From the NCBI GenBank assembly GCA_030704615.1, contig CM060731.1, positions 47,306,001 to 47,370,000 on the forward strand: DNA of 64,000 nt, given 5' to 3'. The position numbers and the translations under genes are program-made. Shown one piece after another: positions 25,791 through 58,100 of the stretch. The DNA is from Takakia lepidozioides (lineage: Eukaryota > Plantae > Bryophyta). Each line of letters opens with the position of its first letter. Within the stretch, counting starts at the first letter, position 1. Under the pieces are notes generated by a model. It saw only the letters and a list, made by a program, of their open reading frames with translations. It was not told where the DNA came from and did no database searches.

Positions 25791-26269
25791 CAATGGAGCC
25801 CCAATGGAGGGGCCAACGATAAAACCCTATTTGAACTAATTCTGGACTTTGGCTTAAATCCGGATCAAACTTAATATATTACTGAATTAATTCAAATATT
25901 AATAATATTATGGTGTAATGTGTGAATGAACTTTGTGAAATTATAGGTGATGTCATACTTGCTTCAAAATGTGTCATATAAGAGGTCCAGTTGACATTGA
26001 AGTGCTTGTGGAGTTGCAGTACTCAACAATTCATGAAACGTCCAGTGGGAAGTCGAATGATGTCATAATATTACATTATGCGATAAACAAATGTGTCGCA
26101 TCGAACATCAGGCAAACTCCTACTCTACCATACTCGACACAACTTGCTAATTTTAATTGAATCTTCATGTCAAGCACATTCATAGACAACACCATTGGAA
26201 TGATGTTTTGGGAGTAACAAGGGCAGTAAAATATTAAAATAGCATGAAACATTAGGAAGAGGTAACAGG

Positions 26270-27880: not shown

Positions 27881-28819
27881 CGAGAGGAACATGTGCCAAA
27901 AATAGGAACGCACGCTGCCCATCCAAAAATAGCAAAAACACAGTTGAAAGTATGTCCCCCTATGAGATTTGGAAAGAAATGATGTTATATAACGACCGCG
28001 GACGCCGGAAAGTGCATAGTGCTCGTGGGACAAAATGGAAAAAAATATGAGAGAGATTAAAAAGTCAGAGCCCAAAATAAAAACTATGAGAAATGAAATG
28101 ATCCAATGAATTGGTGCTCTATAATGTCGCGGGAAGCTCCTAGTGTTTATGGGACAAAATGGAAGAGAACATGAGAGAGGAAATAAAATCAGAGCCAAAA
28201 ACTAAAAGTATGAGAAATGAAATGAAATGAAATGAAATGGTGCTTTATAACGTCCGCAGATAGGTCATAGAGCTTAGGGAAGAAAATGGGGGAAAACCTG
28301 AGAGATGAAACTTAACGAGTGGCAAATTGAAAACTATGGCAAGAATGATTGGCTAAGGGTCCTCTTAGTGGAAGACTTAAGTGAGAGACTTGGTTCTGCG
28401 GAAGGAAGTGCAATCATTGAGAGAATGACTCAAATTGGCCTACTTTTTTTTTGTAAAAACTTGGATGGAATGTAATGTGAATTGTGTTCCTGCCAGCCTT
28501 TTTGTTTTTGTGAACTGTATGTTTTCTAGGCCAGACTCCCCCACACAGTTATTTTTTTTCGTGAACAGTAAATATACCAGGCCAGAGTCGACCACACACG
28601 GATCAATGATTGCAAACGTCCACTGGACATTCGAGGTTGAGTGCGACAGTAGAAGACAACAAAAAGGAGCCCCCGACGTAAACAACAAGTGCCATGAAGA
28701 CAAAGAGAAATTTATTTCTTATATCGAAGTACCAAAATTGACCTCAACATTATGTCCTTCAACTGCGACTCTTTCACAAGACTCACTTTCTGATTGAAGA
28801 TTCGCCTCCTCTAAATTTG

Positions 28820-37134: not shown

Positions 37135-40100
37135 AGGTTTACTATTTCATGAGCAAAAACCATGAGCCATGAGCCATGAGCCGCATGAGCGGTGAGCCGA
37201 AGTCTAAGACACGCGGATTTCATGAGCGGACTCCTCCAAATTTGGAAATGTGGTAGATTACAAAAGTATTAAAATAATAGTTTTTTATTTGACCTTGCCG
37301 TTTTTGGAAGTTCCAGATCCTGTAATGCGGCGAAGATATGTCGTCAATAACAACTCCGCTCATGGTTTTTTAGATCCGCTCATGGAAATGTGTGACCGTG
37401 CAACGAGAAATCCAGTATACCACGACAAAAGGACGTCGCATACTGGCCTGTATAGAGTATTCCGCGGTTTTACATGCCTTAACATTGGAATGAAGCTGAC
37501 CCTTCTGCCGCGATTGAACCAATAGAGTCTGCACCAATAGAGTCTGCAATACTTCACAATTCTGTCATCTTCGGGTATTCGGCGGGAAAGGTTTGCGACT
37601 CAACTGGGAAATGCGGTGCCGCATTAGGGTTCGCACGTGCGAAATTTCTGGGGGGTTTGGTGTTGGCGACGGTCGGCTCCCTAAAGGCTGGGTGCGACTA
37701 TCTTGCTATGATGAAGGCCGCATCTACCAGTACCTATGATGTTACTTGGAAATGCGGCGCCGCATTTCCTTGCCGGGGGTCAAATGAGGAAAACAAAGTT
37801 TGGGAGAGCAGAAAAACAGGAACCCTCCAACAAACAAAAATACAAGCACGTGGAAACATAAGTGAATAACATAGTATTATCTTAGTTCAAGCAAAACAAG
37901 TTACTGGTAGGCAAGACATAAGTCGGACCTTTCTGTGGCCAGAGTCAGAGGTACTTGCAGCAGTACAGTTCTACTATAACTGAAACTCCGAAAAGGATGG
38001 GCGTACCATTGTGTGGGGACCGCAAGCCAAGCTCACTAGTCCCCTGGATCCATATTCAGAAGAGTGCGCACCTCTTGGGGGCTCAACCCTGGTGCATGTA
38101 TGAAGTGATGAGTTGTGGAATTACACCAGAGTCTCTTTAGGTACACGTAGTACAGATGCTTGCAAGGGCAGTATGATGCCCCCTTGTTCACCATCATCTG
38201 GAAGTCGGTGCAATTGCAGGTGGGTAATTCTGAAATGGTGATGGTGTACACCTCATTGCAAACAGCTGAGCATGTCGTGGCCATCTGATACACACGCCTG
38301 AAGCCTGGTAGGTGCACTTCTGTCGAGCTCTGGATTGTACAGTTCATCTGAAGTGCATTCCCTATCCTTGTCTCGTTCACTTTTGAGGGAGGTCGCCGCC
38401 TCTTCGGTTTCCCCCAACGGTGCGTAGGATGCTTAGAGCTGTCGCGTCCCATTGTTCTTGCTCTCACAGAGGTCGGTGGTGGAGGCTGTGGAAGCAGAAA
38501 TGGTTGTCTGGGGACGTCAGTGCGCTGCACCATCCGAAAGCTTGCGGCAGTAAGGGCGTCGGCCTCAACCTGACTCAGATCGCAGCCTGGTTCCACCGGC
38601 CACACCGGGGGAGCCTCTGGCATTGTTTGTATGCCGTACTTGGGCTTTCCATACACGCAAGTCATAATGTCGTGCCTGCAAAACCAAAACTGGGTGGTTG
38701 TCGCCTCCGCAAACTTTGCATGGACAAATCTTCCTATAAAAGTAGGAGCAGGGACAGCCCCATCTGGATTCCTCCTTATCATCTCTAAACAAAGTTGCCA
38801 TGTATCCACTCGAATTGCGGAACACCTGCCTTGAAACGCCAGCTTTGTGCGAGCAATTCTCCACTGTGACGCAGACACAGTCGTCTCCACAATGGCTTGG
38901 CCATACTGCATAACAACGGGCGGAATCTGGGGCAAGCGAGCGGTGGGAATTTCTTGCACGGAATCCCCGCTTGAAGGCGATGGCGATCTGGAAACTCTTG
39001 GGCTTCCACTGCTGGAAGACACATTGTGCGGCAACATGACGGGACCTCGAGGTGCTGTCAGAATGTTCCTATCGGATCTCCAAGAATCCTCTTCGCACCC
39101 AGGTTCCTCTTCAATCCTCCACCTCACAGGGCGAGTACGGACGTCCCCCTCTAGGTGTTCACCTCTGCGGGTGTAGAGGCGTCCCTTTGATCTTCTCTCG
39201 ATATGATGTCGCCCATTTCAGTGGATTCTTGGACCTCGAAGCTGTTCGTACCAACAATTCCTCCTTGTCCGGCCCAAAGCCCCATTGTTTCCCGCTCAGG
39301 AACTTGTAGTACGTGGCTTGCTACATGATTGCTCTGTCGATGTCCTCCATTGTGGCCATCACTACGTCCACCACATGTGCGGCAGAAGACGCTCGCTAGG
39401 AGGAGTGGACTGATTCTGCCATATTCGTGTTCGGCATGTCCGTGTCGGAATCCAAGCACCGCTCCTACAAGGACAGAAACAATGGTGAGGGACCAATGGA
39501 AAGGTCCGTAATAGAACAACAATTGCACGAAAATGACAGCGTCATACCTCCCGCATGTACTGTCCGAACTGTCGATACCGGAAATGCCACCACCCCAACC
39601 AGCTGTGCAAGGCTCCCAGATTGGTTGTCTCTACTGCACCTGACGTGTTCCACCAAGCCTCGATGATAGCAAACTTAACCTCCGCGTCATCAAATGTGGG
39701 TGCATCCTTCCACGCCATACAAATGACACGGTGTTTAGCCTGGAATGAGCTAGCAACAAATCCGGTAGTGTAGTGAGATAGACTCTGCATCAAATGGAAT
39801 CCACAAGATCTCTCTTTCCCCTCCATTGGAACATTGGGGTCCTCACCATACACATGCCGCACCGCTGCCCAGTTGGCGTGAGCGTTGTCTGCCATGAATC
39901 CCCTGAAATTGGGCTCTGGCAAACCCGCCCTTGCCATCTACTCGTTTATGCCCTCCCACAGATGCATCTCCGACTGTGTGTCCTCCCCTTTCATCTCGCA
40001 GATTGCAATCGTCATGAACCTCTTGGAGTGATAGTCATAAACATGCGCACCCATAGTCACCCACTGATGGTTTGTAATTTGCTTGATGTGGTCAAACATC

Positions 40101-41497
40101 ACCCAAGCATTCGACAAGTTTCCAGTTGTCATGCGAGTGACCAAGTCGATTCCACTCCCAAACCCACACGTCGACATTTTAAAAATGTAACAACGATCGG
40201 ATTCGCTGCCTTGCCCTGGAAACCTGTTACCTTGGATGTAGTCATATCTAGTCCTTCGTTTCACCTCCAGGATTGAGTGCATGGCCGACCCCCGGCCGAA
40301 CTCCTGCTTGCAAGATACGATGTGATTCCGCACATTCGGACTACAAACGTGCGAGACGGACTCCAACAGGTCAAGCATCTCCTCTTCGTTCAAGGGCACT
40401 CGGTCTGAACCATCTTTAGACATGATTTTGCCAAGAGCAATCTTGTGGGCTGCCTTCAGCTGAATCTGCTTTGGTCTGGCTCCGGGGCTCAATTTCACCT
40501 CCTCTTTTATGATGTCGTGTGCTTCCTGCACAACCTCCCGCATGTTGCCTCTCGCCAAGGGGTGGCAGTGGACCCCAACGTGTATGCAAGCTCTAGTCAA
40601 GTTCGGGAGCAAATGGATTACGTAATATTGCTTGGCTCTGTACATGGACATGCACGTCGGTGGTTCTTTGCAATGTGCGCACTTGAAAGTACCTGCAGGA
40701 GCTTGGCTGGAGACAATGAATGGATAATGGGTTGTGCAAGTCCAATCCGTCTCATTTCTCCGCCCTCGTTTGGAGAGAAAGTGGAAGCAGGCGGGATTGA
40801 GGCACCTCAACTTCCCGGCACAGAGGACGTATCGTACACGAACACCATCAGCAATTTTCGTGCTACTGGTCTTCGTCACACACCAGGGGTGTCCGTCATG
40901 CTTTCGATCCATGTCTGTTAACATCCCTGAGGCTTTGTTTGACGAAGTAACAGGTGGAAACTTGAAGATGACATTGCCATCGACTTCGGGAGGCAGATAC
41001 GTTACCTTCCTGACTGGAATTTGGCATAGTCGAGAGCAGCCAGCTTGGAGCGAGAACCATCGAGGTGATGTTGCCGTAGGAGCTACACAATGGACCGGGT
41101 TGGAGTTATGCTCGAGGGTACATGCGTGGCACCTGCAGAGACGTCCATGTCGGATTTGAACAACCGTGTGGAGGACATGGGGACCTCAATGCACTCATCT
41201 TCCTCGTCGGAAATGTCGAATACCTCCACACGAGAAGCTATGGAGGGTCTTGACGGTCCAGGTCGGGAATGATTATCGTTGCATACCTCTCTGTTGGCAG
41301 TGGCCGCCTGTCGGTTTCCCGACTCCTTTGTGGATGGTGTCGGAAGCGACTGATTCGGAAAGGGAATGGACAAGATGGTGTCTGATGGGGTAAGTGCCAC
41401 TCGATTCCGCAACCTCCGTCGTTACCTAGCATGACAATGGTCTCGTCAACCTGTCCAGGAACATCCTTCCTTTCTTCTTCCAAATAAACTGTGCCCG
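37135..41497 (-). mobile_element. Mutator-like element: GCM/WRKY-like Zn domain + DDE transposase + SWIM; pseudogenised; 5' part continues at 53513-~53790
   Basis: DGHPW...CAGKLRCLNPAC...CAHC...HVGVHCHP; VMFDH (D1); FMADNAHAN (D2); CGFH; TNMAESVHS (E, ~39429-39403); SWIM CNCTDF...CKH. Terminus AGGTTTACTATTTCATGAGC is shared with the 16412 copy. Confidence 0.85.
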
Positions 41498-41850
41498 TGT
41501 CAAGTTAAATAAGCACAGTGTGAAACTAACTAGAATAAAGCTAGTTATTTGTATTTAACACTTGGATTTAGGTCAAGTGTTTAATCAGGTGTCAAGTTTA
41601 GTTTGACACCTAAACCGTCTTATCTTCACGAGAGCGTCAGTCGCGCAGCTCATCTCTCTCGAGTTGAGCCTGCACGACCGAGCTCCTTCATCGTTTAGAA
41701 CTGAGTGTACTTATGATGGGAGGATAGGTTGTTGTGGGGTGGAGTCCCCATAGCTTGGGGTGCCCCTGACTCGACTATTATCTGAAAGAGTGATGATGAG
41801 ATGGATTTCATGTTTCTTGTGTTAAGAGTGTGTTCTTAGTTTTCTTATCA
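41498..41850 (+). repeat. LTR segment B1 (most of U3, R, U5)
   Basis: Near-identical to 53078-53426. Confidence 0.95.
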
Positions 41851-41864
41851 CTCGAGAGAGATGA
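41851..41864 (+). promoter_or_regulatory. Self-priming primer-binding site
   Basis: CTCGAGAGAGATGA is the exact reverse complement of TCATCTCTCTCGAG at 41650-41663; there is no TGG tRNA PBS. Confidence 0.75.
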
Positions 41865-42914
41865 CCTCTTACATGTGAGTGCAAGGTAGGAGTTGAGGGT
41901 TAGCACTTGTATGATTACCTGTGTGTAAGTAGTGCTTAGTTTAAGAAGCTTAAAAAAAAAAAAAAAAACCATGCAGGTTTCGATCATCTTTGGTTTCTGG
42001 GTGGTGGGGGAGGAGATGGGAGCGGAACGAGCTCCGTTGACTGTGCAGCGATGAGTCTCTCAACTCGAAAGCTTTGAGACGGTTGCGGGTGTCCTCATTG
42101 CGAATGACTGCATCTCCTCCAAACAGAACAAACTTGTCCTTGTTAGTGAACCCCCGCTCGTGGTTGCCTTGTGCAGAGCGTGTCCGGCTGCAACGCTGTC
42201 TGATTGCACAAACTTGTGTAGCTCCTGCTCCTCTACTCCAGTACACCACGGCCTTGTGGCTGAACACCTTGGTACCCAGGGCTGTCTTTGGCTGTGTTCC
42301 AAGCCTAGCTTTCACCCACTTTGGTATTTCACCTACACCTGCAGAACTGCTGGCTCCAACAGAGTTCTGACTGTCCAAAGCGATATTGAGTCCCTCAACG
42401 CCAACTACAGCAGTTTGTTGTCTACTGCTAATGCCTGACTCCCAATATGCAATCAATTCGTCCAACTGTTCTCCACTCAAATCAGTCTGAGTTCCTTGGG
42501 AAACATAAATCTTGTCCCCTTATATGCACAGGCTAAGAGACGAGACCTGCCCTTCAATTACGTCCTCATTTCCCCCAGCCATACAAGGAGGACATCCACA
42601 GATTTGTCTCTCATATAGACCAGAACAGGTTCTAGAAACAAAATTGTGGATCTTTCACGGCACACTCACACTCTAAAAATTCCATAGATTTTTAGCAGAG
42701 TCCCAAAAACAAAAACCAGGTCTAGATAGGTAGATTTCCCCTTTTTGTAGGTCCCTGCGCAAGTTTTGGGTCAAACGGCCTTGGTAGGCCAAAGTTATGG
42801 CCAAACAGGCTCTATCTAATTTAAATTAGATCAAAGAACGAATTTCTTTTAATTTTTCACACCCAACATGTTCTCGCCATTAAAAACTGTTCCCACATTT
42901 TTTGCGATTCAGTA

Positions 42915-43154
42915 CAGGTTCCCTAAGAATTCCTTGGACTCCTTCTTCAAACCTTCATAATAGCTTTCCAAGGCTAAAGCAGGAGAAGCCAATGTCAACA
43001 CAGGGGCCACGACCGCAGCCATCACAGCCCGTCGCTGCAAGGCTTCAGCGTCTGTTTTTGCTTGGCACCTCACAGGAGCCATCTTGAAAGAGACAGCGGC
43101 ATGGTGAGACGGCACAGCCACACAAGTTCCCACCAACGAAGAAGCGGATGCCAT
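42915..43154 (-). pseudogene. Captured host fragment: bipartite chloroplast transit peptide with twin-arginine (Tat) thylakoid-lumen signal
   Basis: MASASSLVG...VRCQA...LQRRAVMAAVVAPVLTLASPALA|LESYYEG. Confidence 0.6.
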
Positions 43155-43999
43155 AATGCTTGAGGAAACTGAGTGACGCCAGTGGTTGAACTCTTCCGTG
43201 GTTGACAATTGCAGGTTGCATGTGCTGCGGGCTTACCAAATAGATATGGCCAGTTCTGTAGCAGACAAGTTCGCTGCAGAATTTTGAGAGCTCAAACGCG
43301 AAGAAAAGTTGTGATTTTGGATGGCGAGAGAGTGAAGAAGTCGCAATGATTTGTACGCATGCGCTCCGAAAGCCAGAGAGATGCTAGGGTTATTGCAGGT
43401 GATTAAGGCCATGCCGGTGTGTTTGGTTTTTTCTGTCGGAGCCACATTGCTAAAGCGAACTTGGAGGATGTTGCCTTGGCCCATGATGGAGTGCAGCGCC
43501 TCTGTAGTGGCAGGCTGTGAGTGGAGGGAGTTGAGGTGTTTGAGAACCAGTGTCAACGCGTCCCTTTCAGGTACGATCTCGTGAGCTGTGGCGGCAATCC
43601 CGATCGGCTGGTCCGTAGAATCTTGAGTTGTGGTCGGATCAGCATATTTTCAACGCGAACTCCCTGCACTTGCATTCTTTGTTTGGTGTCTTCAGATGCA
43701 ATGTAGATGAAGCAGAACTTAGAATCAGCCTTGGCATTGTGTACATGGAGGATTTCAAACTCGTCTCCATGAAATACGTTTCCATGAAATACGTTTCCAT
43801 GATCAGGCGCTAGTGACAGCTACTTGACATTGTGATATCGACCACGGAGGGAGCAGATTCGTTGCCAGAGAGTGTTTTCTTGTGTACACGGGGATACTGT
43901 ATCCTGCTACAGGAATCCACCAGAAGGAAAGCTACACGCAGCAATGGCCTCTACTCACACAATGCTATGTAAATGTTTCTCAAGGAGAAAAGAAGAGAA

Positions 44000-44620
44000 G
44001 CAAGGTTGGGCGGCAGTTGTTACAGGAATCTGGCCTGCTTGGAGGACATGAGACTTCAAATTCGGAAGGAGCTTCCTCATGATATTTCGCGATGGAGAAA
44101 GCCATCAGGTGAAGTTGTTGACAGTACTGATGCTGCCGTAACAGAGCCTGCAGCTCCTGCTTTTGAACTCGAAGTAGTTTCTGCTGCAGCACCTGGAGCT
44201 GGCCGAGACTGCTGCAGTTGCGGAGCCTACTCCAGTGGTGGATGCAGTAACTCCTGCTCCCGAGGCCGATGTATCTGTTGTGATACCAGAGACAGAAACC
44301 AAAGAAGTTGTGCCCACTGAGACTGAGACGAAGGAGGCGGTCTCTGCCAAGACAGGGCTTTCCAAGGAGACTGTAGTTGAAGAGCGAGATGAGAGTATCC
44401 CTGAAGATGTAGCTATGTGGGGCGTCCCTTTGCTCCACACCAAGGGGGATGAGCGAACTCGGTGCAAATCACAGAGCTGAAGAACTTCCCATTTTTCTCC
44501 CCTACCAAGAAAGAACTGAGGATAGCTACAAATGAGGCTCGGGTGTTGTTGCAGGATAATTACCCGGAACTGGTTGTGAAAAAGGTTTTCACCAACGTCC
44601 CGTTTCATCAATTGCAAGCT
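44000..44620 (+). pseudogene. Captured patellin (Sec14/CRAL-TRIO) fragment with internal deletion
   Basis: Acidic repeats, then VAMWGVPLL..KGDERT fused to KELRIATNEARVLLQDNYPELVVKKVFTNVP. Confidence 0.8.
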
Positions 44621-45282
44621 TCCCTGCCGTTGTTGTTGTGCGAGCTCATATCAGACCCTACCTTTGTTTTCTTTAGTGTTCAGTGAGCGGGAGATAGAGG
44701 AGTATTGCTTTGTCTCTACTTGGCAGAAAGAGGAGGAGGGTTGGTTAGAGCGAGCTACTGTAGCTTGGGACAAGGTTAGTGGCAGGTTTCTGGACATAGA
44801 TATACCTACCTACACCTTACCATCATGCAGAGCGAGGCACTTTGAGAGAAGTCTGGCAGTTGATAACATAGATCAGGATTAGATCTTGCTTGGTCGGGCT
44901 TCTATTCTTCCCCTCCATCTCTGTACTATTTTCATTACCTTGTACTTGTAGTTGCCAAAGCCTCTCTTGGTGGAGGCCAGTCAGTCCGGGGTTTTGGGCT
45001 GGGATATTCTGCAGGTCAGCACTGCAGATGGATTTTGGTGTGGGGGTGTTGATGTTTTGATTTCTTGTGTTTGGATCCCCCCCAACACCTGCATGCTTGA
45101 CTGTGCGCCATGTTGGTTTTGTGTGGGCACTTGCTTTCATAGGGATTAGGCCGGATTTGATCACCGGTCAATCCTAGAGTATGCTGTCGGTGGTGAGGCT
45201 GGAGTGATGACTAGCAAGACCACCAGTGTTTCTTCTATGGTGAGACTGGGTTGATGACCAGCCAACCTTAGGAGTTCTTGCG

Positions 45283-47000
45283 GTGGATGCAGGTGCAGGT
45301 GCCCTGAGCCACTGGGATATGACCCTTAAACTGCAACAAGTACCTACCCGTGTCACTATTAGAATTAGTAATAGAGCCTTAAAGTGTCACGTGGGGGAGG
45401 TGCACATTGTGAGTGTCATCACGGAGTTACCCAGGGGTTCTGAGGGGAGCACGGCTACAGGCAGTAGCAGTGAGAGTGGGTTCACCAGACGAGGTGTTCA
45501 TTTCAGACCACCTTCACCTCCACCTTCAACTAGTGCAGAGTCAGACATAGACTCGGAGGCTTCATCAACAGGTGTGCAGTTTCATTCGCCATTGTTGTGG
45601 GACGACATGGAGGAGATGTATGGAGCTACCAAGGGCCTCGTAGGTACTCTGGAGCTGTGGGCACAATCGAGTTGGATGACTTTATCCAGGGTTCGACAGC
45701 TGGTGTGATTTGCAGCAGATGCGCAATCCACAGCTATTCACCCCATTCATGGCGTGGAAGGGATTGTTCCAGCATTTGGAAGGCCCGCCTATGGACGATT
45801 ACCACGAGTTCAGGCGAGGACATGAAGCAGAGATTGAGGAGTGGAGGATGTATTGGTCACCTGACTACGTCTCCATTACTCAAGGCACGACGCGACCAGT
45901 AGCTGCATCAGTACCAATATCTCCCACTGCCAGCACTAGTAGTGGAACAAGTAGTGCCGGTACTTCTGCAAGTGGTACCAGTTCAAAAGGTGCTACTACT
46001 CCTCCTGCCACGACTACAACACATGTGCCTAGATTCAACCTGGTGGTGGAGTTCTTCCAGGAGTTGTGGAGGAACTACCAAGGTGTACGGACAGAGAAGC
46101 TGCGAAGTTTGCAAGACTTCCAGCGCAAACCCAATGAGAGCCTGCGAGAGGCGTACACTCGTATGAGGCGCTTGATAAGTGTGACCCAAGGGGTTACTGA
46201 AGCTCAGGCAATCCAGTTCTGGTATGGAATTTTGGACAAGGAGCTCAGGAGAAGGGTGCGGGATGCAACCCTGTTACAAGTAGCCCACCCACATTAGCAG
46301 TGTTTTCTGCTGCTGAGCGATTGAGCTAACATAGTGGAGGAGCGAGTTGTTACCATTGGATTGGCAAAGACATGCCTGCACGAGGCGCACTGCCAGCCCA
46401 CAGGCACAATGGACGGCCCAACAAACGTGGTAAGGGGGGCAAGGTTTCCCAACCCAAGTTCCATGGAGGCTTACAGGGGACCTCAGGTGCAGAGGGCCGT
46501 GGCATCTTTTGCAGGCCAACAGCAACCAGGGGTGATATGTTGGACATGTGGAGGACCCATGTCAAGAGAGATTGCCCAGAGAGTGGCAGAAGGCCGGCAC
46601 AAGCAACAGCCTGCACAGTTGCAGTGTTGGGCATTGTGGCAAGTATGGGCATAGAGATGCCCAGTGTTATGACTTGCATCCTGAGTTGCGCCCAGGCCAG
46701 TTCCAAGGAACAATGGTGGCCGGGGGCGAGGTGGACCAGCCCAGAGAGGACGAGGTGGTCGGGCACAAGTGCAGGCCAAGGGCAAAGCTCAACAATGGCC
46801 AAGGAGCGGAGGTCCGGGTGTTGACCAAGGCATGGCCAACCTGCTTTCAGTAAGCTAGAGCAGAGGCTCGCTGCCATGGCCACAGCTCAGGCGGTACCAC
46901 GGCCCAGGCGGGATGGTCCACCTCCTGCGCCTGAGGGAGGAGATATAGGAGGCATGGGATTCATGTGCGGAGCAGCGCTAACACTAGAGCAGGTGGAGTC
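45283..47000 (+). pseudogene. gag of the DNMT-Gypsy element (frameshifted)
   Basis: LQDFQRKPNESLREAYTRM; knuckles CWTCGGPHVKRDC and CGHCGKYGHRDAQC. Confidence 0.8.
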
Positions 47001-47589
47001 TGCTGCAGCCGTGACTCGAGAGCATCACGAGTTCCTGAGCCACGAGGTGCAGAGGTGGAATTGGATCCACAGCGTGGGGGAGGCAAGCCGTCATGCGAGG
47101 CTTCCTCAGTCATTCACATTGGCGAAGACAGTGTCGACGCCATCCATGGACCATAGTTCTCCGCCCGACTGTTACCGAGGCGGATGTTACTATGCCATTG
47201 GGGAGAGCTACACGTGCAGCACTGACCACCTGCTACCAAGGCTAGTGCAGCCGGTGTGTTGTTGGGCAGCCACGTCTGTGTGTCAAGCCCCACTGTTTTC
47301 GTCAGGCAACCATGATTGCGACCGCCGGGGGTCAGAAAACCAGCTGCCAGTGTCAAACTAGCAGCACACTCTGTGAGAGTGGGGAGGTACTTTCACTTCA
47401 TCTTCTGGCGGAGTTAGTGGAAGGTTTAGTGGCAGAGGGATCCTCGATTTGAGGGTCAAGACTGCCATGCAAGCTACAGCTGCCAGTTGACGGAGCTGCC
47501 AGCTAGGTCCAGCCTTTGAGCGCGCCATGGTGACACCTGGAGTTGTCGTTGTTAGACAACCAAGATGACATTTTCACTTTGAGTGGACC

Positions 47590-47920
47590 AGCAGCAAGAT
47601 TACCAGCCACTGCGGGTCTTGTTGGACTCGGGCAGCTCACCATTGATGTTGGGCAGAGCTGCTATTGCAGGTTTGGGCCTCATGGAGGGCGGATATGGAG
47701 CCTTGTCCTTTCCAGATACAGACATCTCTGGAGGATCAAAGCAGGCTCGGGGCATGACACGGCGTGAGTTGGCATTGGACTACAGCCGGATCATCCTGTA
47801 GATGGCTCAGTGATGTGAGCCAAGCCATTGTGACAGACCGCGTCTCTTACGATGTCCTCATTGGTGGGGCAGTGTTATTTCCCATGGGCTTCACTCTGGA
47901 CTTTTTGGAGGAGTCCAGCA
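47590..47920 (+). pseudogene. Aspartic protease domain
   Basis: LRVLLDSGSSPLML ... SYDVLIG. Confidence 0.85.
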
Positions 47921-48335
47921 TCCTACAGGCCTGGATGGCCGTCATGGGATGGTCGTCGTGACACAGCTCCCTGTGACATTCATTGGGGGTATTGCGGCTG
48001 CCCAACAGGGCAAGATGCCAACACTAGCCGCCTTTACACTGCAGTTAGTTGGCCTGAGAGTTTGCTGGAAGGCAATGCCCATGCAGAGGATGTGCCACCT
48101 CCAGCAGAGTAGGATGAACATGCATGGTATGGCGGAGTTGCCTGCCATGGTTGCTCACACTCCATTGTGGGGTACGAGCAAGGATTTGCAGCAGGTTGCT
48201 GATCGACGGGTGCAACAAGCCTGGGTAGAGACCTTTTGTACCGTCAGGACAGGAGGAAGTGCGGGTATTGCACCAGGACCACCTCAGTTATCACCATTGG
48301 ATATACCACCCTATTGTGTGGCAGTATCCGGATGA

Positions 48336-49290
48336 GGCATTTGCCTTCTGGACTTGTGTGGCGGGATCAGCACTGGATTGGCTGCTGTGGGCTACAGGTA
48401 GGTGTGCGGGTAAGGCGTTACCTGTATGTGGAGAGGGATAGAGACCTGCACGACGCGTCTCATGCGCCATGTTGCTCAGTTGGTACAGCATTACCCTGCT
48501 TTGTTGCCAGTGTCTGCAGTTCGTGGATACCAACAAGCCTTGCCAACAGACATTCGTTGCTGGGGGCGCCAGATTTGGAGCAGGTTGGCTCCATTGATCT
48601 GGTAGTGGCAGGCTGGCCCTGCCAAGGGCATTCATCAGCCGGCATGGCAGGGATTGCGAGACTCTAGGACGGGTCTGTTTTGGGAGATGGTGCGGATTTT
48701 GCGCCACTTGCAGCTTCACCAGCGTATCGCCAGCATACATTTTGGAGAATGTGCCACTGATGGGCGATTCTCGGGCCAGGGTGATGGCCAGTGTTGCATC
48801 AAGTCCGGTCGTGGCTTGGGTCAGCAGTGCTGTTGGATGCAGCACAGTGGGATCACGGGCTCATCGTCCACGGCTATGGTGGACTAACTTGATGCCACCC
48901 CACTGCTCAAGCGTGCATTTGAGGGGTACAGCGGCCAACACACCTCACAGTGGACAAACATTTTGGGACCAGGGAGGCAGTCTCACGTGTGAGACACGAT
49001 GACCATTCGCCTTTGGCAGTGGTCAACAGGGTGGGTCAACCACGAGCAGCATTACCTACATTGCTCAGCTTCCCAGGATTCCATGCGTTCGGGATGGTGG
49101 ACCTACCTGGCCTCATGTGGGATGCTTCAGTTGCGCAGTTTAGTGGACCTAATGCCAACGAGCAAGAGCGGGCTATGGGGTTTTTCCACTGGGACCACGG
49201 CGGTGCCTTCTCTTTCTGAGGCATCACGTCGTCAGGTGTTGGGGCCAAGCAATGGATCTCAATTGCTTGACCTGGATTATCAGCTTGGCT
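48336..49290 (+). pseudogene. C5-cytosine DNA methyltransferase domain, DNMT3-like (frameshifted)
   Basis: Motif I LLDLCGGISTG; II VRRYLYVERD; IV IDLVVAGWPCQG (48596-48628); V RTGLFWEMVRIL; VI ENV (48745-48753); VIII SRAHRPRLWWTNL; IX EQERAMGF; X SRRQVLG..MDLNCL. Confidence 0.9.
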
Positions 49291-49729
49291 ATGGCTGAGC
49301 AACGTAGAGTGCGGAGTGCACTTCCTTGACTGTCTCTCTGCCTACCGAGACGGTACAGGCAGCGAGTGGGGGCGAGCCGGTGAGGACCACGGGGTGTAGA
49401 CATCCATGGCACACGTGGGAGGTGCTCGAGGTTCAGAGGGAGTTGGTAGCCAAGGCAGCTGTGATGGATAAGGTTGGGGATTCTTCTCGGGATGATGAGG
49501 TCCTCAAGGATGAGATGATGGGGCAGGATGAGGCCTTGTCATTGACTGAGCAGGCAGCGATTACTGCTCAAGAGGTTGCGGCATAGCAACCATGGGACGC
49601 GTCTTCTACCTCTAAGCCCACTGGACTTAAGGTTGCAGTTACGGAGGACAATTGGGAGCCTGACATTGGACCCATTGTCACCGGAGGAGAGAGACGACGT
49701 ATACGGTGGTTCCTGAGGGCTTACAGGAA

Positions 49730-51080
49730 TTGCTTTGCCTTCAGTTGAAGGACTTAGGAGCACTGAAGGGTCAAGAGATTCGCATTGAATTGGCTACTGA
49801 CATGCCAATCTTTCGGAGACCCTATAGATACAGTGACATGGAGAGGTCCTTGATTTAGATGAGAACTCAGGACCTTTGGGAGGCTGGTTTGGTGGAGCTA
49901 TCTAGGGGAGAGTATGCTTCAGCCACAGTGATGCCAGCCAAGATGGATGTCTATGGCAATTGGACGGAGAGACGTATGTGCGGTGATTACCGGCCTGTAA
50001 ATCGTCAGACCAAGTCCGATAGGTATGCCATGCCGACACCAGAGGAGATCTTTGATGCCATTGGGCATGCCAAGGCTTTAGCACGTTGGATTTACGATCC
50101 GGATATCACCAGTTGCCGATCACGGAGGCGGATAAGCAAAGACGGCTTCTGGGGGATCAATGAGCACGGGAAGGATTGCTATACCAGTGGCGGTTCTTAC
50201 CATTTGGGCTTAAGAACGCTCCGGCAGAATTTCAGAGAGTCATGGACAGGATTCTAGCAGGGGTGGAGTTTGCTCGGTGCTACATAGATGACATCATCAT
50301 TTTTAGTGCTACGGTGGAAGAGCATGAGAGACACCTTCAGGGGTATTTGAGCGCTTGAGGGCGCACGGATTGAAGTTACATCCGGGAAAGTGCAAGTTTT
50401 TCCACAACCAAATTGAGTATCTGGGTCACATGATATATCCTGGAGGATTGGGGGTACAGCAGACTAAGGTAGAGTCCATTGCACAAGTTCCACGCCCCAC
50501 GGATGTGAGCCGGGTTCGAGCTTTCATGGGTTAGCAAACCTATTATAGACGGTTTGTTAAGGGATTTAGTGCCATTGCAAAGGCTCTAACCAAGCTAACC
50601 AAGGTGGACCAGGAGTGACAGTGGGGAGATGAGCAAGAACAAGCTTTTCAAGAGCTCAAGGCGAGGTTGACCTCGGCGCCCATCTTGAGACGACCTATCA
50701 GGGGGCGTCCTTTTCAGCTGCATACAGATTGAAGCATGCTGGGGCTTGGAACGGTGCTCATACAGGTGGATGATGAGGGAAGAGAGTTCGTAGTGGCTTA
50801 TGCTAGCCGCTCGAACAACGTTGCAGAGTCTAAGTATAGCTCATATGATGGAGAATGCTTAGCTGCAGTGTGGGCCGTGGGATACTTCAGGTGCTATCTA
50901 TACGGCAATCTCTTCACCTTTGTCCGGATCACCAACCACTCAAGTGGTTGATGGAGTCAGACAAGCTTCGGGAAGCTTGCACGGTTGGCACTCATCCTTC
51001 AAGAGTATGACTTTTCAGGTGGTGCATCGACCGTGGTTTTGGCCAATCGCAATGCAGATGGGTTGAGTCGCAATCCATGC
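49730..51080 (+). pseudogene. Reverse transcriptase and RNase H
   Basis: RMCGDYRPVN, LPFGLKNAPAEFQ, CYIDDIIIFS; FQLHTD, VVAYASR, ECLAAVWAV. Confidence 0.95.
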
Positions 51081-51450
51081 ACGAGCCAGCATGATGACAC
51101 TGGAGCTCGTGGCAGGTGAGACGGACGAGGAATGGTGCCCGGATGTCATGCAATCTTATTTCTGTGTATCTTGGCAGCGAAGGCCAGGTTGGACCTGCAA
51201 ACCAGGGATGAACTGTAGATACAAGTGTCTGAGGACCCCCTGAGGCCAACAATGAGGCAGTCGCCAAAATATACATGGGATTCAGTTGTGTTGGATTAAC
51301 CTCCGCACTGAGCACTGCAGCCACCGGTGACTGCCACGGAGAGGATCGGATCCTACAACGAGCCAAGAGGTTTCAGTGGGAGGGAACCCTGCTCAAGTGG
51401 GAGGGGACACACCTGCTCCAAGTGTGGGAGGATGGTTGTTTGAGTGAGGA

Positions 51451-52729
51451 TTGTGCCTCACCCAACACAGCGGGACACGGTTACGCGGCATGCCCATGAG
51501 GAGTTGGGGCATTTTGGGGTGCGACGCACTCATAGTCTACTGTAGCGGGCAGTATTGGTGGCGTGGTATGCACACAGAGGTGCAACAATTTGTGGCTAGG
51601 TGCATGGTGTGTGACAGGGTGAGTGCTTCATTCAACGCCCCTACTCCACAATTGCACCCTTCTGATCATGGGATTGGGCTACAGTGGAGTCTTGACTTCG
51701 CAGCAGGGCCGTTGTCACTGACCATGCGCCACAACAAGTACGTGTTGGTGATGGTGGAGCACTTCTCCAAGTGGATTGAATTGGTTCCATTGCCTGATAA
51801 GGCTAGTGAGGAGCTGCGTATGCATTTGGATTGTGTGCTTAGCCGATTCGGTGCTCCAGCTGAGGTACTCACGGACAAGGGAGAGAGTTCTTGGGGGAGT
51901 TTCAGGCTTTGTGTGACAAGGCCTTGATAGACCACCGCACCACTTCTCGGGATCATCCTGAGGCCGATGGCTTGGAAGAGAGAGTTGTTCACACAGTAAA
52001 GAGGGATGTGCGCAAGTATGGCTTGCAGAAGGGACACCTAGGAGATTGGGACCTTCAGTACCCTGGTTAGCCATGGGCTACAGGTTCAGCAAGCAAGCAT
52101 CATTGCCTCCTTTTCACCATACTTTCTTCTCTTTGGCCGAGAGCCGGATTTGCCTACATCCATTCGCAGGGAAGCTGCTACAGTTCTTAACCTTGACGAT
52201 CCGGACGTGTGGGCACGTGCATGTGAGCAGCGTGCAGAGTTGTTCAAGAAAGTTATGCCCATGGCTTCGAGAACTTGCCATTGCACAACACCGTGATACG
52301 TTGAGGTATGCTACCATACGTGGTGGGGGCTATCGTTCTGGGGCTCGGAGATTCAACCCTGGTGACTATATCTATCTGCAGCAGACTGCTCCTACAACCT
52401 TGGATGTGACTGCATGACGTGTTATTTTGAGGGTTCGAGAGGTCTTGCCCTCAGGCGTCGTGGTCTTGGAGGGTTGGGAGGGCATAACTTGGAAGGACCA
52501 TGTGCGTAATTGTGCGTCATGTCACCTTCCGAATGTCGATGGCAGGATTGACCCAAACCTGGCAGTGGTATCTGCAAGTTTGAGGTGCATGTTGTGTGGG
52601 TCTGCTAAAGGGGCAGCCACCATGTTGGTGTGTGATCGATGCTCTAGAGGTTAGCATACGGGATGCCTGACTCCACCTCTTGAGATGGTTCCGGATGGGG
52701 ATTGGTTATGTCCAGAATGCATTGGATAG
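51451..52729 (+). pseudogene. DDE integrase with C-terminal PHD finger (52586-52720)
   Basis: HEELGH..YWWRGM..CMVC; WSLDF; EHFSKWIE; VLTD; HPEADG; CMLC...LVCDRC...*HTGCLTPPL..VPDGDWLCPEC. Confidence 0.9.
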
Positions 52730-52979
52730 TGGGAGTGGATACAACCATGGGAGGCTAACAAGAAATGCAAGGCCAAGCTACTAGGAGACCTTGAACACAC
52801 GGATCCTGGCTCAAGTTCACAGATTGCAAGACGGCGACTAACGATGGGGCTACTCTTATACCCGGCCTCTTGGTCTACAGAGTTTGAGTACAACAAGGCC
52901 AGTGATAGTAGAGGACTTAGTACGGCTGTGGCTATTACATCTTGTAGCTATCTGGAGTTAGGGGACCTATCCACCAGCT

Positions 52980-53512
52980 AGGGGGGCGATTGTGGCAGAC
53001 TACTTTATTGTGCATATATGTGTGGTGTGGTTTGGACAGCGATGTAGTTGTGTAGCGATACGTATGCGCACGACAGCTGTCAAGTTAAATAAGCACAATA
53101 TGAAACTAACTAGAATAAAGCTAGTATTGTATTAACACTTGGATTTAGGTCAAGTGTTAAATCAGGTGTCAAGTTTAGTTTGACACCTGAACCGTCTTAT
53201 CTTCACGAGAGCGTTAGTCGCGCAGCTCATCTCTCTCGAGTTGAGCCTGCACGACCGAGCTCCTTCATCTTTTAGAACTGAGTGTACTTATGATGGGATG
53301 ATAGGTTGTTGTGGGGTGGAGTCCCCATAGCTTGGGGTGCCCCTGGCTCGACTATATCTGAAAGAGTGATGATGAGATGGATTTCATGTTTCTTGTGTTA
53401 AGAGTGTGTTCTTAGTTTTCTTATCATTGTGGCAGACGACTTTATTGTGCATATATGTGTGGTGTGGTTGGGACAACGATGTAGTTGTGTAGCGATACGT
53501 ATGCGCACGACA
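52980..53512 (+). repeat. PPT, complete 3' LTR (A1 52991-53075, gc, B2 53078-53426), then t and A2 (53428-53512)
   Basis: AGGGGGG-cgat precedes TGTGG; A1 and A2 are near-identical 85-bp copies. Confidence 0.92.
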
Positions 53513-53790
53513 CCCGGTTTGAGCTTGAATTTGAAACAAAGGTAAGTTTCAGTCACTCTGCAAAGTCCTCCCTCGTTTGGGATCCAGGCTCTCCTAAGTT
53601 GCGGAGGACAGCAAACTATAGCGTAGGAATTCGGAGCCATCGAACACCGCATGAAGTCCCGTACTCATATGATTAGTTGGCTGTGTGACGAGATGGACAA
53701 AGACTTGGTCAGATGGCCCAAAGAAATAAATAGCGTCTCTTGATGCATTTTTGCTTCTATGTGTTTGTTCGTAACACTTCACAGTTTGGG
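53513..53790 (-). mobile_element. 5' continuation of the MULE interrupted at 41497
   Basis: Removing the retroelement restores one frame: ...CFKFKLKPG-TVYLEEERKDVPGQ... Confidence 0.7.
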
Positions 53791-53799
53791 TTTCATGCA

Positions 53800-55010
53800 A
53801 TGGGCTTACATGGGGTTACACCTTATAAGGTTATATGAAGTGGAATCATAGACAAGTACTTGGGTACACCTTTGGGCCCTAGGGCAATGGGCTTACACTC
53901 TGGGGTTCACACATAAGTGATGGGTTACACCATGCCGGGTCTCACAACGTGGGGTTACACTTAGGGTACATACAATGGGCCTAGGGTTACATGGTGGGCC
54001 TTCCTGGCTATGTCAGGGTCACGTTGCTGAAACAGTATACTTTCGTGGCATGTAACCCCACCTCGACTATGCGCATTTTGTTTATTTTTTATTTTTTTCG
54101 CCTTGAAGTGTTTGTGCACTGAAGTTCTCAGATTTATACTACATGGGGTTACATACATGAGGGCTATGTACAATGGGGTACATACGATGGGGTCACAATA
54201 GTGTGGGGGTAACATCTGGTCGGGCTACATACTTCTTGGAGTTACAACACTCTGGGTTACACTCACTCAAGAGGGTTACGCAGTTCTAAGTTACACTGTG
54301 CACAATGTGAAGTGGGCAGGGTTGCCTATACAAGGGCTACGTGTCGTGGGATACATAAGATGGGGTGATGTAGCATCGGGGTTTATAGCGTGCACCCCAA
54401 ATTGTACAATGGGTTACATGCGATGGGGGGTGACATCAATGGGGGTACATGTGGTCGGGATGACATACTTCTTGGGGTTACACAACAACAAGTTACACTC
54501 CGGAGGGCTACACTGGTCCATAACATAGGTTTGAACGGAATAATGATTATCTATCTCATGGATTACACGTCCATGGGTTACACACAAATTGGGTTACACA
54601 TAGAGGGGTTACACATACAGGGGCTAGTGTTGGTGACTAAAGGTGCTCGACTTCAACATCTTCCCACTCTGTATTGAAGGGTCATGTAACCCCGGCAGAC
54701 TAACCCAGACCTTATAGTCACATTGTAGTCATCGACTTATAATTCTCAGAGTTACACCACTGACAGCAATATTCTATGGGGTTACATACTGGGTTACACT
54801 GTTGATAGTTACATTGCAGTTACACTTGGAGTTACACCACAATGAGTTACACTGAAGAGGTTCGACTCATCTGTGTTACACTGTGTGGAGTACCACAGAT
54901 GCAAGTTACACTAAGTAGAGCTATGTTACGTTATGAAACCCCAGACAGTGTAACCCTGCGGTGTGTGTCACCCCGGCCCATGGGTGTCCCATTGAGTGGG
55001 TTACATAGGT
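53800..55010. repeat. GGGTTACAC motif-rich region downstream of the MULE transposase
   Basis: Dozens of ggttacac/gttacat copies. Confidence 0.85.
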
Positions 55011-55188
55011 TGAATGTGGATGGAATGGCAAAGTGAATAACAACCCATGAACAAACATGTACTTCATATTAAACTTGGTGATCACAAAATAAGTGTCATT
55101 GCCAATGGACTCAATGGTCACTTACTACGGAACCGGTCTACAAAATCTACTTTCCTGGCAAGGGACATGTTGTTTCCATCATCATTTT

Positions 55189-58100
55189 TTATGAATGGAA
55201 CTGCTTGAAGAGGGTGCAACAGACCTTTGTCGATTCTAACTTGTAAAGTGACAGCCTCCCACGAACACAACGAAGCTCGGCAAGCAAATGTTTGCGCATT
55301 GTTTCACTCTCATTGCCAAGAAGCGACAGGGACTTCATCTCAGATTCAATTGATGAAACATCCAATGGCTCCTGCCGACCATGCCGGGATGATGCTGAGC
55401 ACTCCGTAGGCTCTGCTAGATTCACAAATCCTCCTCTGCATCAATATCTGGAAGTTCCGATTTCATCAACATGTGAAGACCTCCATGAATGGTCTCGAGC
55501 TTTGTGCCACAGAGCTTCACAATAAGCCCTTCCTTCAGATTTGGCTTCATCAATTGAAGAACGCGGATTTGATGTTTGCACAAGTTACCCTTCAAAGCCC
55601 ATGGACAATCGCAACAAGCCCAAGTGGTCGCAGGTGCATAGATTGTGTAGCTTCGACCAGCCGTTTGAACACTATCCACAATCGCCGGATGACCAGGAAC
55701 AGTGGGCAAATGAACATTGACATCAGGGATCTCCCTTGCAGTCCAAACAGCATTACTGATAAATTCCTCCTGTCGTACATTCCTTTTGAAGCCTTTCGAT
55801 TTCAAGTTATCTCTATACCAATAGTGGGTTAGAACAGGACCCACGAGTTCGCTGATCAGCCAATCGATTCTCCTGCCATCAAGCCTTTGCTTTCCCGAGC
55901 GTAAACGAGCCTTCAAATTTCCGTGCCAAGATTCAATTGCGGCATTAGTATCCTGACTTGCTTGGGGAATATAACGAGCCCCCGTGATCCACATGCTCAG
56001 TTTTGGGACCCATTCCATTCTGATGTAACGTAGGAAGTCACGCGCAAGCGGATAGGAATAATTCAAATCTTCCAGTCGCTCCAGCGCCCACTCTTCTGGG
56101 GTGACTCCCACACAGGCGTTAATGTCGTACATTACGTCGCCAAGCTGTTTCAAAACAGCATTGCGAGTGTATGGATCGGGCATCTTACGCCACGAATGTT
56201 TCAGCCAAGCGCGGCAAACATGCCAAAGGCATAGAAATATTGCTACGTCCCCAAACGATTCCCTGCACGCACACACATCAAATGCCACCCAATCCATCAG
56301 TGTAACTCTTGTCAGTGTAACTCTTATCAGAGGAACTCTTCGCAGTGTAACTCGTAGAAGTGTAACTCTTCAAAGTGTCACTCTTAGTAGTGTGACTCAT
56401 GTAACCCCTCGTGCATCTGGTCATGTAACTATCAGTGAAACTCACAGCAGTGTAACCCAACACATATAACCCCTCGCAGCGCTGTAACGCAATCCATGTT
56501 ACACCGTGTAACTCTCAGAGCGACCCAACCTATACAACCCTCTGCGATGCTCCCAGTGTAACTCACATGCTATAGCAGTGCAACCTAATCCATGCAGGAT
56601 TGCGGATGACACGCCGTGTAACTCCCAGTGTAACTCGCAGTGTAACCCTCTATCTACCTCATAGCAGTGTAACCCTCAGTCTAACTCACAGTAGTGTAAC
56701 CCTCGGTCTAACTCACAGCAGTGTAACCCTCCGTCCAACTCAAGGCAGTATAACCATCTGTCTAACTGATAGTATAACCCTCAGTGTAATAGACAGCACT
56801 GCAACCCAATCCATGTAACCCCTCGAGCAACTGACAGTGTAACTCCAAGTGTTACAGGCAGCAATGCACCCCCTCGTGTAACTGGCAGTTTAACTCTTAC
56901 TGTGATTCTCAGTGTAACTAGCAGCAGTGTAGCCCGATCCATGAAACCCCTCGTGCATGCAACTTGTAGTGTGACTCAGAACATTGTAACTTCTAGCCGT
57001 GTACCTGATAGCATTGATTTCTGCGTCTGCATCGTCGACAACAAAAGCATTTGGCCTCCAATCTGGTTTGCTCTGAAGAAGTCGGTCGCGAAGACGTTTC
57101 ATCCAGGGGCTCAGGTCAGTCGTTTTGTTTCTCGCTGATATAATATAAGCAACAGGTATGCCGTTGAGCCATTCGTCGAACACCATCATGGTATACATTG
57201 GGAACTGCAATGTCGCAATGGTACAAAAATGAATAAGGTGAGTGTTATAATATTGGCAACAGTTGCATGGCACTCACATTTCAGAATGCAATGAAAGGTA
57301 AAGCGTGACACGAATACCTTATTTTCGTTGGTCCCAAATGTTGCATCGCATAATACACACGGTTGTGTCCCAGGTCGATCATTTTCTGTTTTTGCCACTC
57401 CGTTTGTATTCCAATTACGAACTTCAAATCACCCGCCACTGGCGCTGTCTCTTCATGGTAGAAGAAGACGCTTTCAGGATTGCTATTGACCCACATACGT
57501 ACACTTTGTGCATCATCTGGATGTTTTTTGTAACTCTCAATCGCAAGCTTGTCGGCAATGTTTCTCACGTCGTACTCGAACAAGAAACAATCGCGACTCC
57601 ACTCCATGCCTGGCTGAGACGCACAAGCTTCCTGGAGTTGTTGAGTGTGTTGTGTCATAATCATAGCTGGAGATAGGCCACTGCGAAGACTATCGACGAT
57701 CCACTGTTTCATATCTTGGCTGAGACGAGGGGCATGCACGAATCGCGAGAAATGGGAAGAGGGGTCAGCTGAACCATGACATGGCTTTCCTTTTGCATCC
57801 ACATGTTGTTTCTGGAAGTATGTGATGATTGCCAACTCTGAATCTAGAAAACACTGGCCAACTTGAAGCTACACGTACACCCACGTTTGTATGACTCTCC
57901 GAAATCCGCTGCTTTACGTCTGATTCGCTTGACTGCTGTTTGATTATCGGAGGCTGCTATCGGTTTTTCTTTCTTCTTCACAATCGGCGGGTCCGTGCGC
58001 CTATCTATCGGGCCGTAGCAGCAATGGTACCTGCAAAAAAAGCATATAAAGCGAGAGGGTTATCGCCAGAAGACTGGGGTGGGGCTGGGAATGTTATACA

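Follow-up and report, generated by a model that had tools for sequence, protein, structure and literature searches.

Split, permuted terminal repeats in a decayed Gypsy-like element of Takakia lepidozioides

Textbook long terminal repeat (LTR) retrotransposons and retroviruses integrate the ends of a linear complementary DNA (cDNA), and circular forms are regarded as dead ends. An insertion at 41494-53516 in a 64,000-nucleotide stretch of Takakia lepidozioides DNA (NCBI GenBank assembly GCA_030704615.1, contig CM060731.1, positions 47,306,001 to 47,370,000; herein the window) raises the question of how an element that encodes a DDE integrase comes to begin and end inside its own LTR. The reading we favor, at a probability of about 0.68, is that the DDE integrase acts on an att-like palindrome inside U3, the unique 3′ region of the LTR, with a cDNA containing an LTR-LTR junction as substrate; a 2-LTR circle would be the simplest such form.

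A split layout bounded by palindrome halves

An earlier note on this DNA had described the repeats of the insertion as split, in the order B...A-GC-B-A. Repeat finding and direct reading bear out that layout base for base, as CCCG-B1 (353 nt)-body-polypurine tract (PPT)-A1 (86 nt)-GC-B2-A2-CCCG, with the following parts.

41494-41497: left target-site duplication (TSD), CCCG, identical to 53513-53516
41498-41850, plus strand: B1, 353 nt, the 3′ portion of the LTR (proximal U3, the repeated region R and the unique 5′ region U5), reading TGTCAAG...CTTATCA
41650-41664, plus strand: predicted self-primer in B1 and putative 5′ end of the genomic RNA, a perfect 15-nt complement of 41850-41864
41850-41864, plus strand: predicted primer-binding site (PBS) of the self-priming, Tf1-like type, directly after U5 and overlapping the last base of B1 (41850)
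41851-52989, plus strand: body, about 11.1 kb, with a PPT block at its end
52976-52989, plus strand: PPT block AGCTAGGGGGGCGA, abutting A1
52990-53075, plus strand: A1, 86 nt, the distal part of U3, reading TTGTGG...GCACGACA
53072-53081: palindrome GACA-GC-TGTC, 10 bp at the A1/B2 joint, an att-like site of abutted ends where the element's outer ends would be cut
53076-53077: GC, the palindrome center
53078-53426, plus strand: B2, 349 nt, which with A1 and the GC forms a single intact LTR (52990-53426)
53427-53512, plus strand: A2, 86 nt, joined directly to B2 and terminating in the integrase-type GACA
53513-53516: right TSD, CCCG

The two copies of B are 96.3% identical and those of A 96.5% (divergence of 3.7% vs. 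3.5%); repeats this long and this similar cannot be of chance origin, and the equal divergence of the two pairs fits a single event that created all four pieces. A BLAST search with the element returned no second copy and no solo A or B repeat in the rest of the 64-kb window. The insertion does not have two complete outer direct LTRs: its 5′ end is B alone and its 3′ end is A-GC-B-A. Its outer ends are the two halves of the palindrome minus the GC, giving termini of TG...CA type (TGTC...GACA) within a 4-bp TSD, which supports the proposal that the boundaries of the insertion lie inside U3 at GACA-NN-TGTC and that the central dinucleotide has been lost. B1 begins with an integrase-type end (TGTCAAG) and closes with the end of U5 (CTTATCA). 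At 53426/53427, B2 abuts A2 in a clean U5|U3 (LTR-LTR) joint. The earlier description of this joint as B2-t-A2 holds for the junction but not for the spacer; the t is the first base of A, which begins TTGTGG in both A1 and A2, so that the CTTATCA end of U5 adjoins the start of U3 directly.

The positions of the priming sites define the LTR used in reverse transcription. As the PPT abuts A and the PBS abuts B, this LTR is A-GC-B (A-NN-B in general, where NN is the central dinucleotide), and it is for this unit only that the PBS directly follows U5 and the PPT directly precedes U3. A PBS of the transfer RNA (tRNA) type (TGG...) is absent. The 15-nt complement exceeds anything found in shuffled sequence (0 of 2000 shuffles reached at least 12 nt; maximum, 11) and indicates, as far as sequence can, self-priming like that of Tf1. 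The genomic RNA would then begin near 41650, with U3 ending at ∼41649 and R-U5 spanning ∼41650-41850; from the position of the self-primer, B would open with ∼150 nt of proximal U3 and continue as R-U5. The proposal that the true LTR is A-GC-B is thus upheld, with the conserved PPT on one side and the 15-nt self-priming complement, as priming site, on the other. Relative to LTR-body-LTR, the integrated copy is circularly permuted, with the opening inside one U3.

Related families with the same ends

Searches with a piece of the integrase found no protein more than 77% identical, and the closest named relatives are from Marchantia; the generality of the layout is judged throughout on related families, with 60-77% integrase identity. 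In Marchantia polymorpha, locus L001 reads B1...A1-AC-B2...A2 with the ends TGTC...GACA, and a further Marchantia locus (L075) reads PPT-A1-(GATA-GC-TGTC)-B2|A2. In Closterium, locus L074 reads B1...A1-B2|A2 and has an intact GACA-GC-TGTC at a third A/B joint. The palindrome, with a GC or AC center, is common to these three loci and to a metagenome family represented by locus L005, and from Closterium to liverworts the permuted ends keep the form TGTCA...CGACA. The ends defined by reverse transcription depart from TG...CA in L075, which closes with ...TTTC, and in Closterium, with ...CCTT. Exact 4-bp TSDs flank three other insertions (L001, TAGT; the long-form L005, AAGG; and the short-form L021 of the same family, ACTA).

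The signals for reverse transcription are shared as well. The PPT block AGCTAGGGGGGCGA is conserved in L001 and the L005 family, has one change in L075 and is similar in Closterium; the window element and three other families have it directly against A. Self-priming complements are found in Closterium L074 (12 nt) and in the L005 family (10-12 nt), where a TATAAAG box lies ∼30 nt upstream of the candidate RNA start.

The L005 family allows the forms of the integrated copies to be counted. A scan with the conserved pattern of the PPT plus the start of A returned 53 of its metagenome loci; probes for A, B and the body served to annotate the copies, and those with the same flank were counted once. 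Exact-protein look-ups of the gag-side open reading frame (ORF) gave mostly one locus repeated across samples, and the host is presumably a bryophyte. The independent copies are distributed as follows.

Long form (B...A-NN-B-A): 13 independent copies
Short form (B-body-A, with ...GACA followed by unique flank): ∼17 independent copies among L008-L060, e.g., L021, L044, L010 and L016
Foldback form: 2 independent copies
Unresolved: 1 (L017, counted among 18 short-type ends)
Canonical 3′ end: 0 of ∼33

On the opposite side, none of the eight independent 5′ ends is canonical (A-NN-B) and none is B-A-NN-B; all read flank-B-PBS. This census of 5′ ends, together with where the TSD, PPT and PBS lie, led us to reject both B alone and B-A as the LTR. 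In all intact long copies U5 abuts U3 cleanly, and L048 has a deletion across the joint. The palindrome center is GC in most copies and AC in L014, L026, L039, L051 and L072. Many copies have transitions in the GACA/TGTC arms, which fit decay after insertion, possibly driven by methylation. The flanks of L072 (GAGT and AAGT) match at three of four positions.

The short forms contain no repeated sequence. They make up about half of the copies in the family and were unforeseen in the earlier note; the long forms account for ∼40%. A comparison made to see whether the short forms are older deletion products gave long and short copies an identical median distance of 0.090 (p = 0.51), which favors none of the models. 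The sequences of the short forms derive from short-read metagenome assemblies, in which their loci assemble identically in different samples, and these forms may have arisen from 1-LTR circles, double cuts or a later deletion between A1 and A2, or may in part reflect assembly collapse.

Both foldback copies (L032:3246-3880, the same locus as L037, and L059:1168-1800, in oriented coordinates) consist of A-NN-B, a PBS hairpin (CTCAAAGAAC-TAT-GTTCTTTGAG) and the inverted first ∼180 nt of B. They look like integrated foldback cDNAs derived from a self-priming hairpin. As they terminate in ...TCATGACA beside unique flank, any TGTCATGA-type end appears to be accepted for integration.

All integrated copies found in the clade are bounded by halves of the U3-internal GACA-NN-TGTC palindrome. 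The suggestion that the arrangement could be a normal pathway gains from the search for canonical copies, which found none in the relatives, with the qualification that it covers related families and not that of the window. On these sequences we favor the permuted form as the norm of the clade, and a normal pathway over a one-off event.

A Klebsormidium nitens locus (L073, DF237852.1) starts inside the element, without a 5′ end, and has no A repeat at its 3′ end. Downstream of its PHD finger, at L073:5340-5440, it reads ...GCGCGACA, 17 nt, TGTCATGCG...; here an A-type end and a B-type start are 17 nt apart rather than 2, with no second A after them. This locus therefore speaks neither for nor against the split-repeat layout published for the species.

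Coding content, lineage and surroundings

Pfam matches of pieces and tblastn alignments place the domains of the body in the order gag, protease (PR), Dnmt3-like methyltransferase, reverse transcriptase (RT), RNase H, DDE integrase and PHD finger. The body is frameshifted throughout, with no ORF longer than ∼200 amino acids (aa), and is colinear over 7.5 kb with better-preserved relatives by tblastx.

41865-45611, plus strand: 5′ leader, ∼2.6 kb longer than in relatives, with an A17 run at 41953-41969
45612-46700, plus strand: gag-like region, frameshifted (Retrotrans_gag E 9e-4, under the curated cut-off)
47583-47798, plus strand: aspartic protease remnant with an LLDSGSS motif; no Pfam match for the piece
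48377-49183, plus strand: Dnmt3-like C5 cytosine methyltransferase, frameshifted, from tblastn
49688-51100, plus strand: RT and RNase H, frameshifted (RT_RNaseH E 4e-17 at 50733-50948)
51444-52275, plus strand: integrase with H2C2 zinc finger and DDE (rve) core, frameshifted (rve E 1e-8, Integrase_H2C2 E 1e-6)
52418-52720, plus strand: C-terminal PHD-finger region, aligning to the PHD-bearing C termini of the relatives P0326 and P0359

No recognizable domain was found in the leader on either strand; it may hold a nested insertion. The gag-like region has colinear tblastx matches to L005, L002 and L072. The methyltransferase region aligns by tblastn to a K. nitens protein, KFL_009030040 (P0364; E 4e-11), and to P0359 (E 7e-8), whose PF00145 match falls within the aligned region; PF00145 is called in both P0359 and P0326. 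The DNMT-like pieces had no Pfam match, either in L005-family copies or in the window, where fragmentation of the copy is the cause. The homology is visible through matches to DNMT3 structures in the PDB, through intact relatives and through tblastn: all 25 weak PDB matches of L072, a related-family copy, are to DNMT3A/B/C, through two colinear motifs, and the methyltransferase motifs FGGISTG, PCQ, ENV and RxRxWW are kept in relatives. The intact relative P0359 has the identical domain order, with PF00145 between PR and RT.

The Pol order PR-RT-RNase H-integrase, with an integrase of the DDE (rve) type, is a Ty3/gypsy feature. Two D residues of the integrase are discernible in the window, and DD35E is intact in relatives; the PHD finger is called by Pfam in relatives too. 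Pfam found no tyrosine recombinase (Phage_integrase) in 30 ORF pieces from both strands of the window, nor any recombinase in 20 ORFs of L002, L005, L066, L068 and L072 or in the fuller Pol proteins P0359, P0326, P0004, P0001 and P0152, though very divergent ones could escape such a search. Two of these proteins, P0152 and P0001 (Haematococcus lacustris KAJ9507810.1 and KAJ9507809.1), have retinoblastoma A/B domains fused to two integrase copies and a PHD finger, and their gene models are probably chimeric predictions through retroelement insertions.

A relative of this kind has been described. KnitGypsy-Dnmt3 of K. nitens is a Gypsy element with a Dnmt3 in Pol (de Mendoza et al. 2018, Nat Commun 9:1341, PMC5890265), noted in the legend of Fig. 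4c of that paper as having DIRS-type repeats with Gypsy domains. The view that permuted repeats are without precedent in DDE-integrase elements is thus overturned, at least by that legend. The passages of PMC5890265 drawn on here make no mention of TSDs, TGTC...GACA ends, a palindrome, self-priming, short or foldback forms, or a mechanism of integration, and the name KnitGypsy-Dnmt3 was not found in the later papers searched. The window element aligns to KFL_009030040 through the DNMT, RT, RNase H and integrase (E 4e-11 to 2e-64). With that protein standing in for KnitGypsy-Dnmt3 by its architecture, and by pairwise homology only, this makes the window element a member of the KnitGypsy-Dnmt3 lineage and not a new kind. 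Judged from its sequence, it is a decayed copy from a streptophyte Ty3/gypsy lineage related to KnitGypsy-Dnmt3.

Removal of the element and one CCCG leaves an empty site where a minus-strand frame of 135 aa stays open through the junction and reads ...KLKPGTVYLEEE... The earlier note had seen here the restored ORF of a Mutator-like element (MULE); the frame does span the junction, but the MULE, or FAR1-like, nature of the disrupted target could not be confirmed. The only Pfam match near the target is a borderline SWIM zinc finger in a neighboring minus-strand ORF (55422-56297). The flanks (53517-56300 and 38036-41497) contain long minus-strand ORFs (363, 328 and 291 aa), and short direct repeats are found at 54167-54500.

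Elsewhere in the window, a second Gypsy-type remnant occupies 33855-36524 on the plus strand (RVT_1, 33855-34880; Integrase_H2C2, 35739-36524), and no terminal repeats of it (∼33.8-36.5 kb) are detectable within 24-41.5 kb. A degenerate tandem array at 26200-28230 has about five copies of a ∼260-370-bp unit, 60-95% identical, AT-rich and strongly GC-skewed. From two host-type genes, a PPR-repeat ORF (6986-7714, plus strand) and a cytochrome P450 fragment (20884-21858, minus strand), the window is recognizable as plant nuclear DNA. Neither an Rfam scan nor a tRNA scan returned a match in the window.

Routes to the permuted copy and known systems

How the permuted copy could arise can be followed step by step. 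Transcription would begin within B1 and extend to the matching R of B2, and self-primed reverse transcription of this RNA would yield a cDNA with two A-NN-B LTRs. A form with U5 joined to U3 would arise, most simply a 2-LTR circle. The DDE integrase would read the internal GACA-NN-TGTC as an abutted pair of ends, nick after each CA, drop the central dinucleotide and insert with a 4-bp staggered cut. A cut in the palindrome of the PBS-side LTR would give B-body-A-NN-B-A, the sole product with a promoter-bearing B upstream and R downstream, and hence the only replication-competent one. Copies of the B-body-A form would come from 1-LTR circles, double cuts or later A1 × A2 deletion, and the NN dinucleotide would be inherited through U3. 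Foamy-virus (PFV) and HIV-1 integrases are documented to cleave palindromic LTR-LTR junctions (PMC1180852, PMC1905944, PMC4372172), which makes the proposed chemistry plausible. One claim of the earlier note falls away, namely that the arrangement regenerates itself: the 3′ end of the predicted RNA falls short of the B2|A2 joint, which must be made anew in each cycle.

Several points weigh against an integrase acting on the U3-internal palindrome of LTR-LTR-joined cDNA. The circular or tandem-LTR cDNA step is reached by inference alone, and the transcription start and polyadenylation sites are inferred rather than mapped. The two identical palindromes of a 2-LTR circle predict B-A-NN-B-body-A and long forms in equal numbers, yet the former is seen at 0 of 8 5′ ends, a weak but unexplained departure (chance ∼0.07 under equal use). 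2-LTR circles are normally rare by-products, yet long forms are ∼40% of copies. L044, a complete short copy, has no TSD; the short forms from short reads could partly be collapsed A-B-A loops; and the generality of the layout comes from related families (60-77% integrase identity) rather than from the window's own.

A broader version of the same reading is more tentative, and we put it at slightly worse than even odds: that the streptophyte lineage (Klebsormidium, Closterium, liverworts) has abandoned integration of linear ends and uses only the att-like ends buried in U3, which would need a circular or LTR-LTR-joined cDNA. If this were true, 2-LTR forms would give rise to replication-competent permuted copies, 1-LTR circles to dead B-body-A copies and foldback cDNAs to copies with inverted ends.

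The alternative that survives best keeps the palindrome and the DDE integrase and changes the substrate, from a ligated 2-LTR circle to a linear, over-length cDNA (e.g., LTR-body-LTR-LTR). Reverse transcriptase would switch template from the end of U5 to the start of U3, the integrase would use the outermost palindromes, and an ordinary two-LTR cDNA would yield B-body-A. Such a substrate would explain why B-body-A-NN-B-A is the sole orientation (with B-A-NN-B-body-A absent from the eight 5′ ends), why the U5|U3 joint is free of indels in all intact copies and why short forms match long ones in both frequency and age; in addition, products of aberrant template switching at the PBS hairpin do become integrated, as the foldback copies demonstrate. 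Against it, we know of no LTR element that makes a three-LTR linear cDNA as a regular product, and the eight 5′ ends are a small sample. We regard it as unlikely, though a serious competitor.

A different enzyme is very improbable. On this account a circular cDNA would be inserted through site-specific recombination at the palindrome by a tyrosine recombinase of the DIRS/PAT/Ngaro type, undetected or acting in trans, and the DDE integrase would be vestigial. The split-direct-repeat topology is indeed a tyrosine-recombinase hallmark (PMC4157794; PMC5890265, legend of Fig. 1e), and the palindromic core resembles a recombinase crossover site. Three features, however, fit DDE chemistry and not conservative recombination: 4-bp TSDs whose sequences are unrelated from target to target (CCCG, TAGT, AAGG, ACTA), TG...CA termini and loss of the central dinucleotide. 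The DD35E of the integrase is conserved in relatives, and the tested ORFs and fuller polyproteins gave no Phage_integrase match.

Recurrence in relatives brings close to refutation the possibility that the window copy is a one-off accident or artifact, in which aberrant integration, rearrangement after insertion (e.g., of a circle with a solo repeat) or mis-assembly altered one member of a normally canonical family. The window does hold a single copy of its exact family, and that copy is heavily frameshifted, but the layout and the TGTC...GACA ends recur in independent assemblies, species and families, three other insertions have exact TSDs, no canonical ends were found, and the A and B pairs are equally diverged. 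A split-repeat layout is also reported for Klebsormidium, in a figure legend of PMC5890265. Scarcely credible, finally, is a true LTR of B-A (TGTC...GACA), with A lost from the 5′ LTR, A1 a stray duplication and the PPT and PBS misassigned: B2-A2 resembles a canonical LTR, with 4-bp inverted ends beside the TSD, but all eight 5′ ends of the L005 family and those of the window, L001 and L074 are B only, though reverse transcription makes identical LTRs, and the conserved PPT abuts A, not B, while the self-priming PBS abuts the end of B, not that of A.

With integration of LTR-LTR-joined cDNA at the U3-internal palindrome as the preferred reading, the interest of the locus lies in a conserved lineage with an ordinary DDE integrase whose copies are yet permuted and cut at an internal palindrome. 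The proposed mechanism is unusual for a DDE integrase, and the layout, shared by relatives that range from green algae to liverworts, has persisted for a very long time. A "circle with att site" model of retroviral integration was proposed in the 1980s and later abandoned; if the broader version of our reading is true, this would be the first eukaryotic retroelement with such integration as its main pathway, and a mechanistic bridge among LTR elements, DIRS-like elements and IS-type circle-junction transposition. The old question of whether a circle or LTR-LTR junction can be a normal integrase substrate becomes testable in Marchantia, a tractable model. There is also a practical side: LTR-finding software would mis-annotate such elements, for instance by taking B for the LTR, finding no TSD or missing the B-body-A forms, and for bryophytes and charophytes both the counts of repeats and the dates of insertions would be biased as a result. 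The Dnmt3-like methyltransferase and PHD finger of the lineage link integration with chromatin marking.

Among known systems, the element is most like KnitGypsy-Dnmt3, with which it shares a Dnmt3-like methyltransferase inside a Gypsy-type Pol and DIRS-like split direct repeats; it differs in that the window copy is dead and, by its closest named relatives, of liverwort type. With the PAT, Ngaro and TOC1 elements (order DIRS) it shares the X-body-Y-X-Y topology, read here as a permuted LTR pair that implies a circular or junction-bearing intermediate. Those elements have a tyrosine recombinase and are not known to have a DDE integrase or TSDs, whereas the window element has a DDE integrase, 4-bp TSDs, TG...CA ends and a Gypsy relationship, with no recombinase detected. 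The likeness to Tf1/Sushi elements lies in the PBS after U5, complementary to the presumed 5′ end of the RNA (15 nt in the window, with the start predicted), in the order PR-RT-RNase H-integrase and in a C-terminal chromatin-reader module on the integrase. Tf1 has canonical LTRs, integrates linear cDNA ends, reads chromatin with a chromodomain and is not known to have a DNMT; the window element has a PHD finger and no chromodomain.

The closest parallels for the proposed chemistry are found elsewhere. In the 2-LTR circles of retroviruses (PFV and HIV-1), two abutted CA ends form an internal palindrome, and its cleavage by a DDE integrase makes the circle integration-competent (PMC1180852, PMC1905944, PMC4372172). 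There the LTR-LTR joint is itself the palindrome, and the pathway is a minor or disputed one, whereas the palindrome of the window element lies inside U3 and its LTR-LTR joint, unlike theirs, enters the genome uncut. Bacterial insertion sequences of the IS3, IS30 and IS911 type transpose via circles or tandem dimers, in which inverted ends abutted 2-3 bp apart form the DDE-reactive junction, and the long form can likewise be read as a tandem, (B-body-A)-NN-(B-A). These are DNA transposons without reverse transcription, and they make their spacer in each cycle, whereas that of the window element would be inherited through U3.

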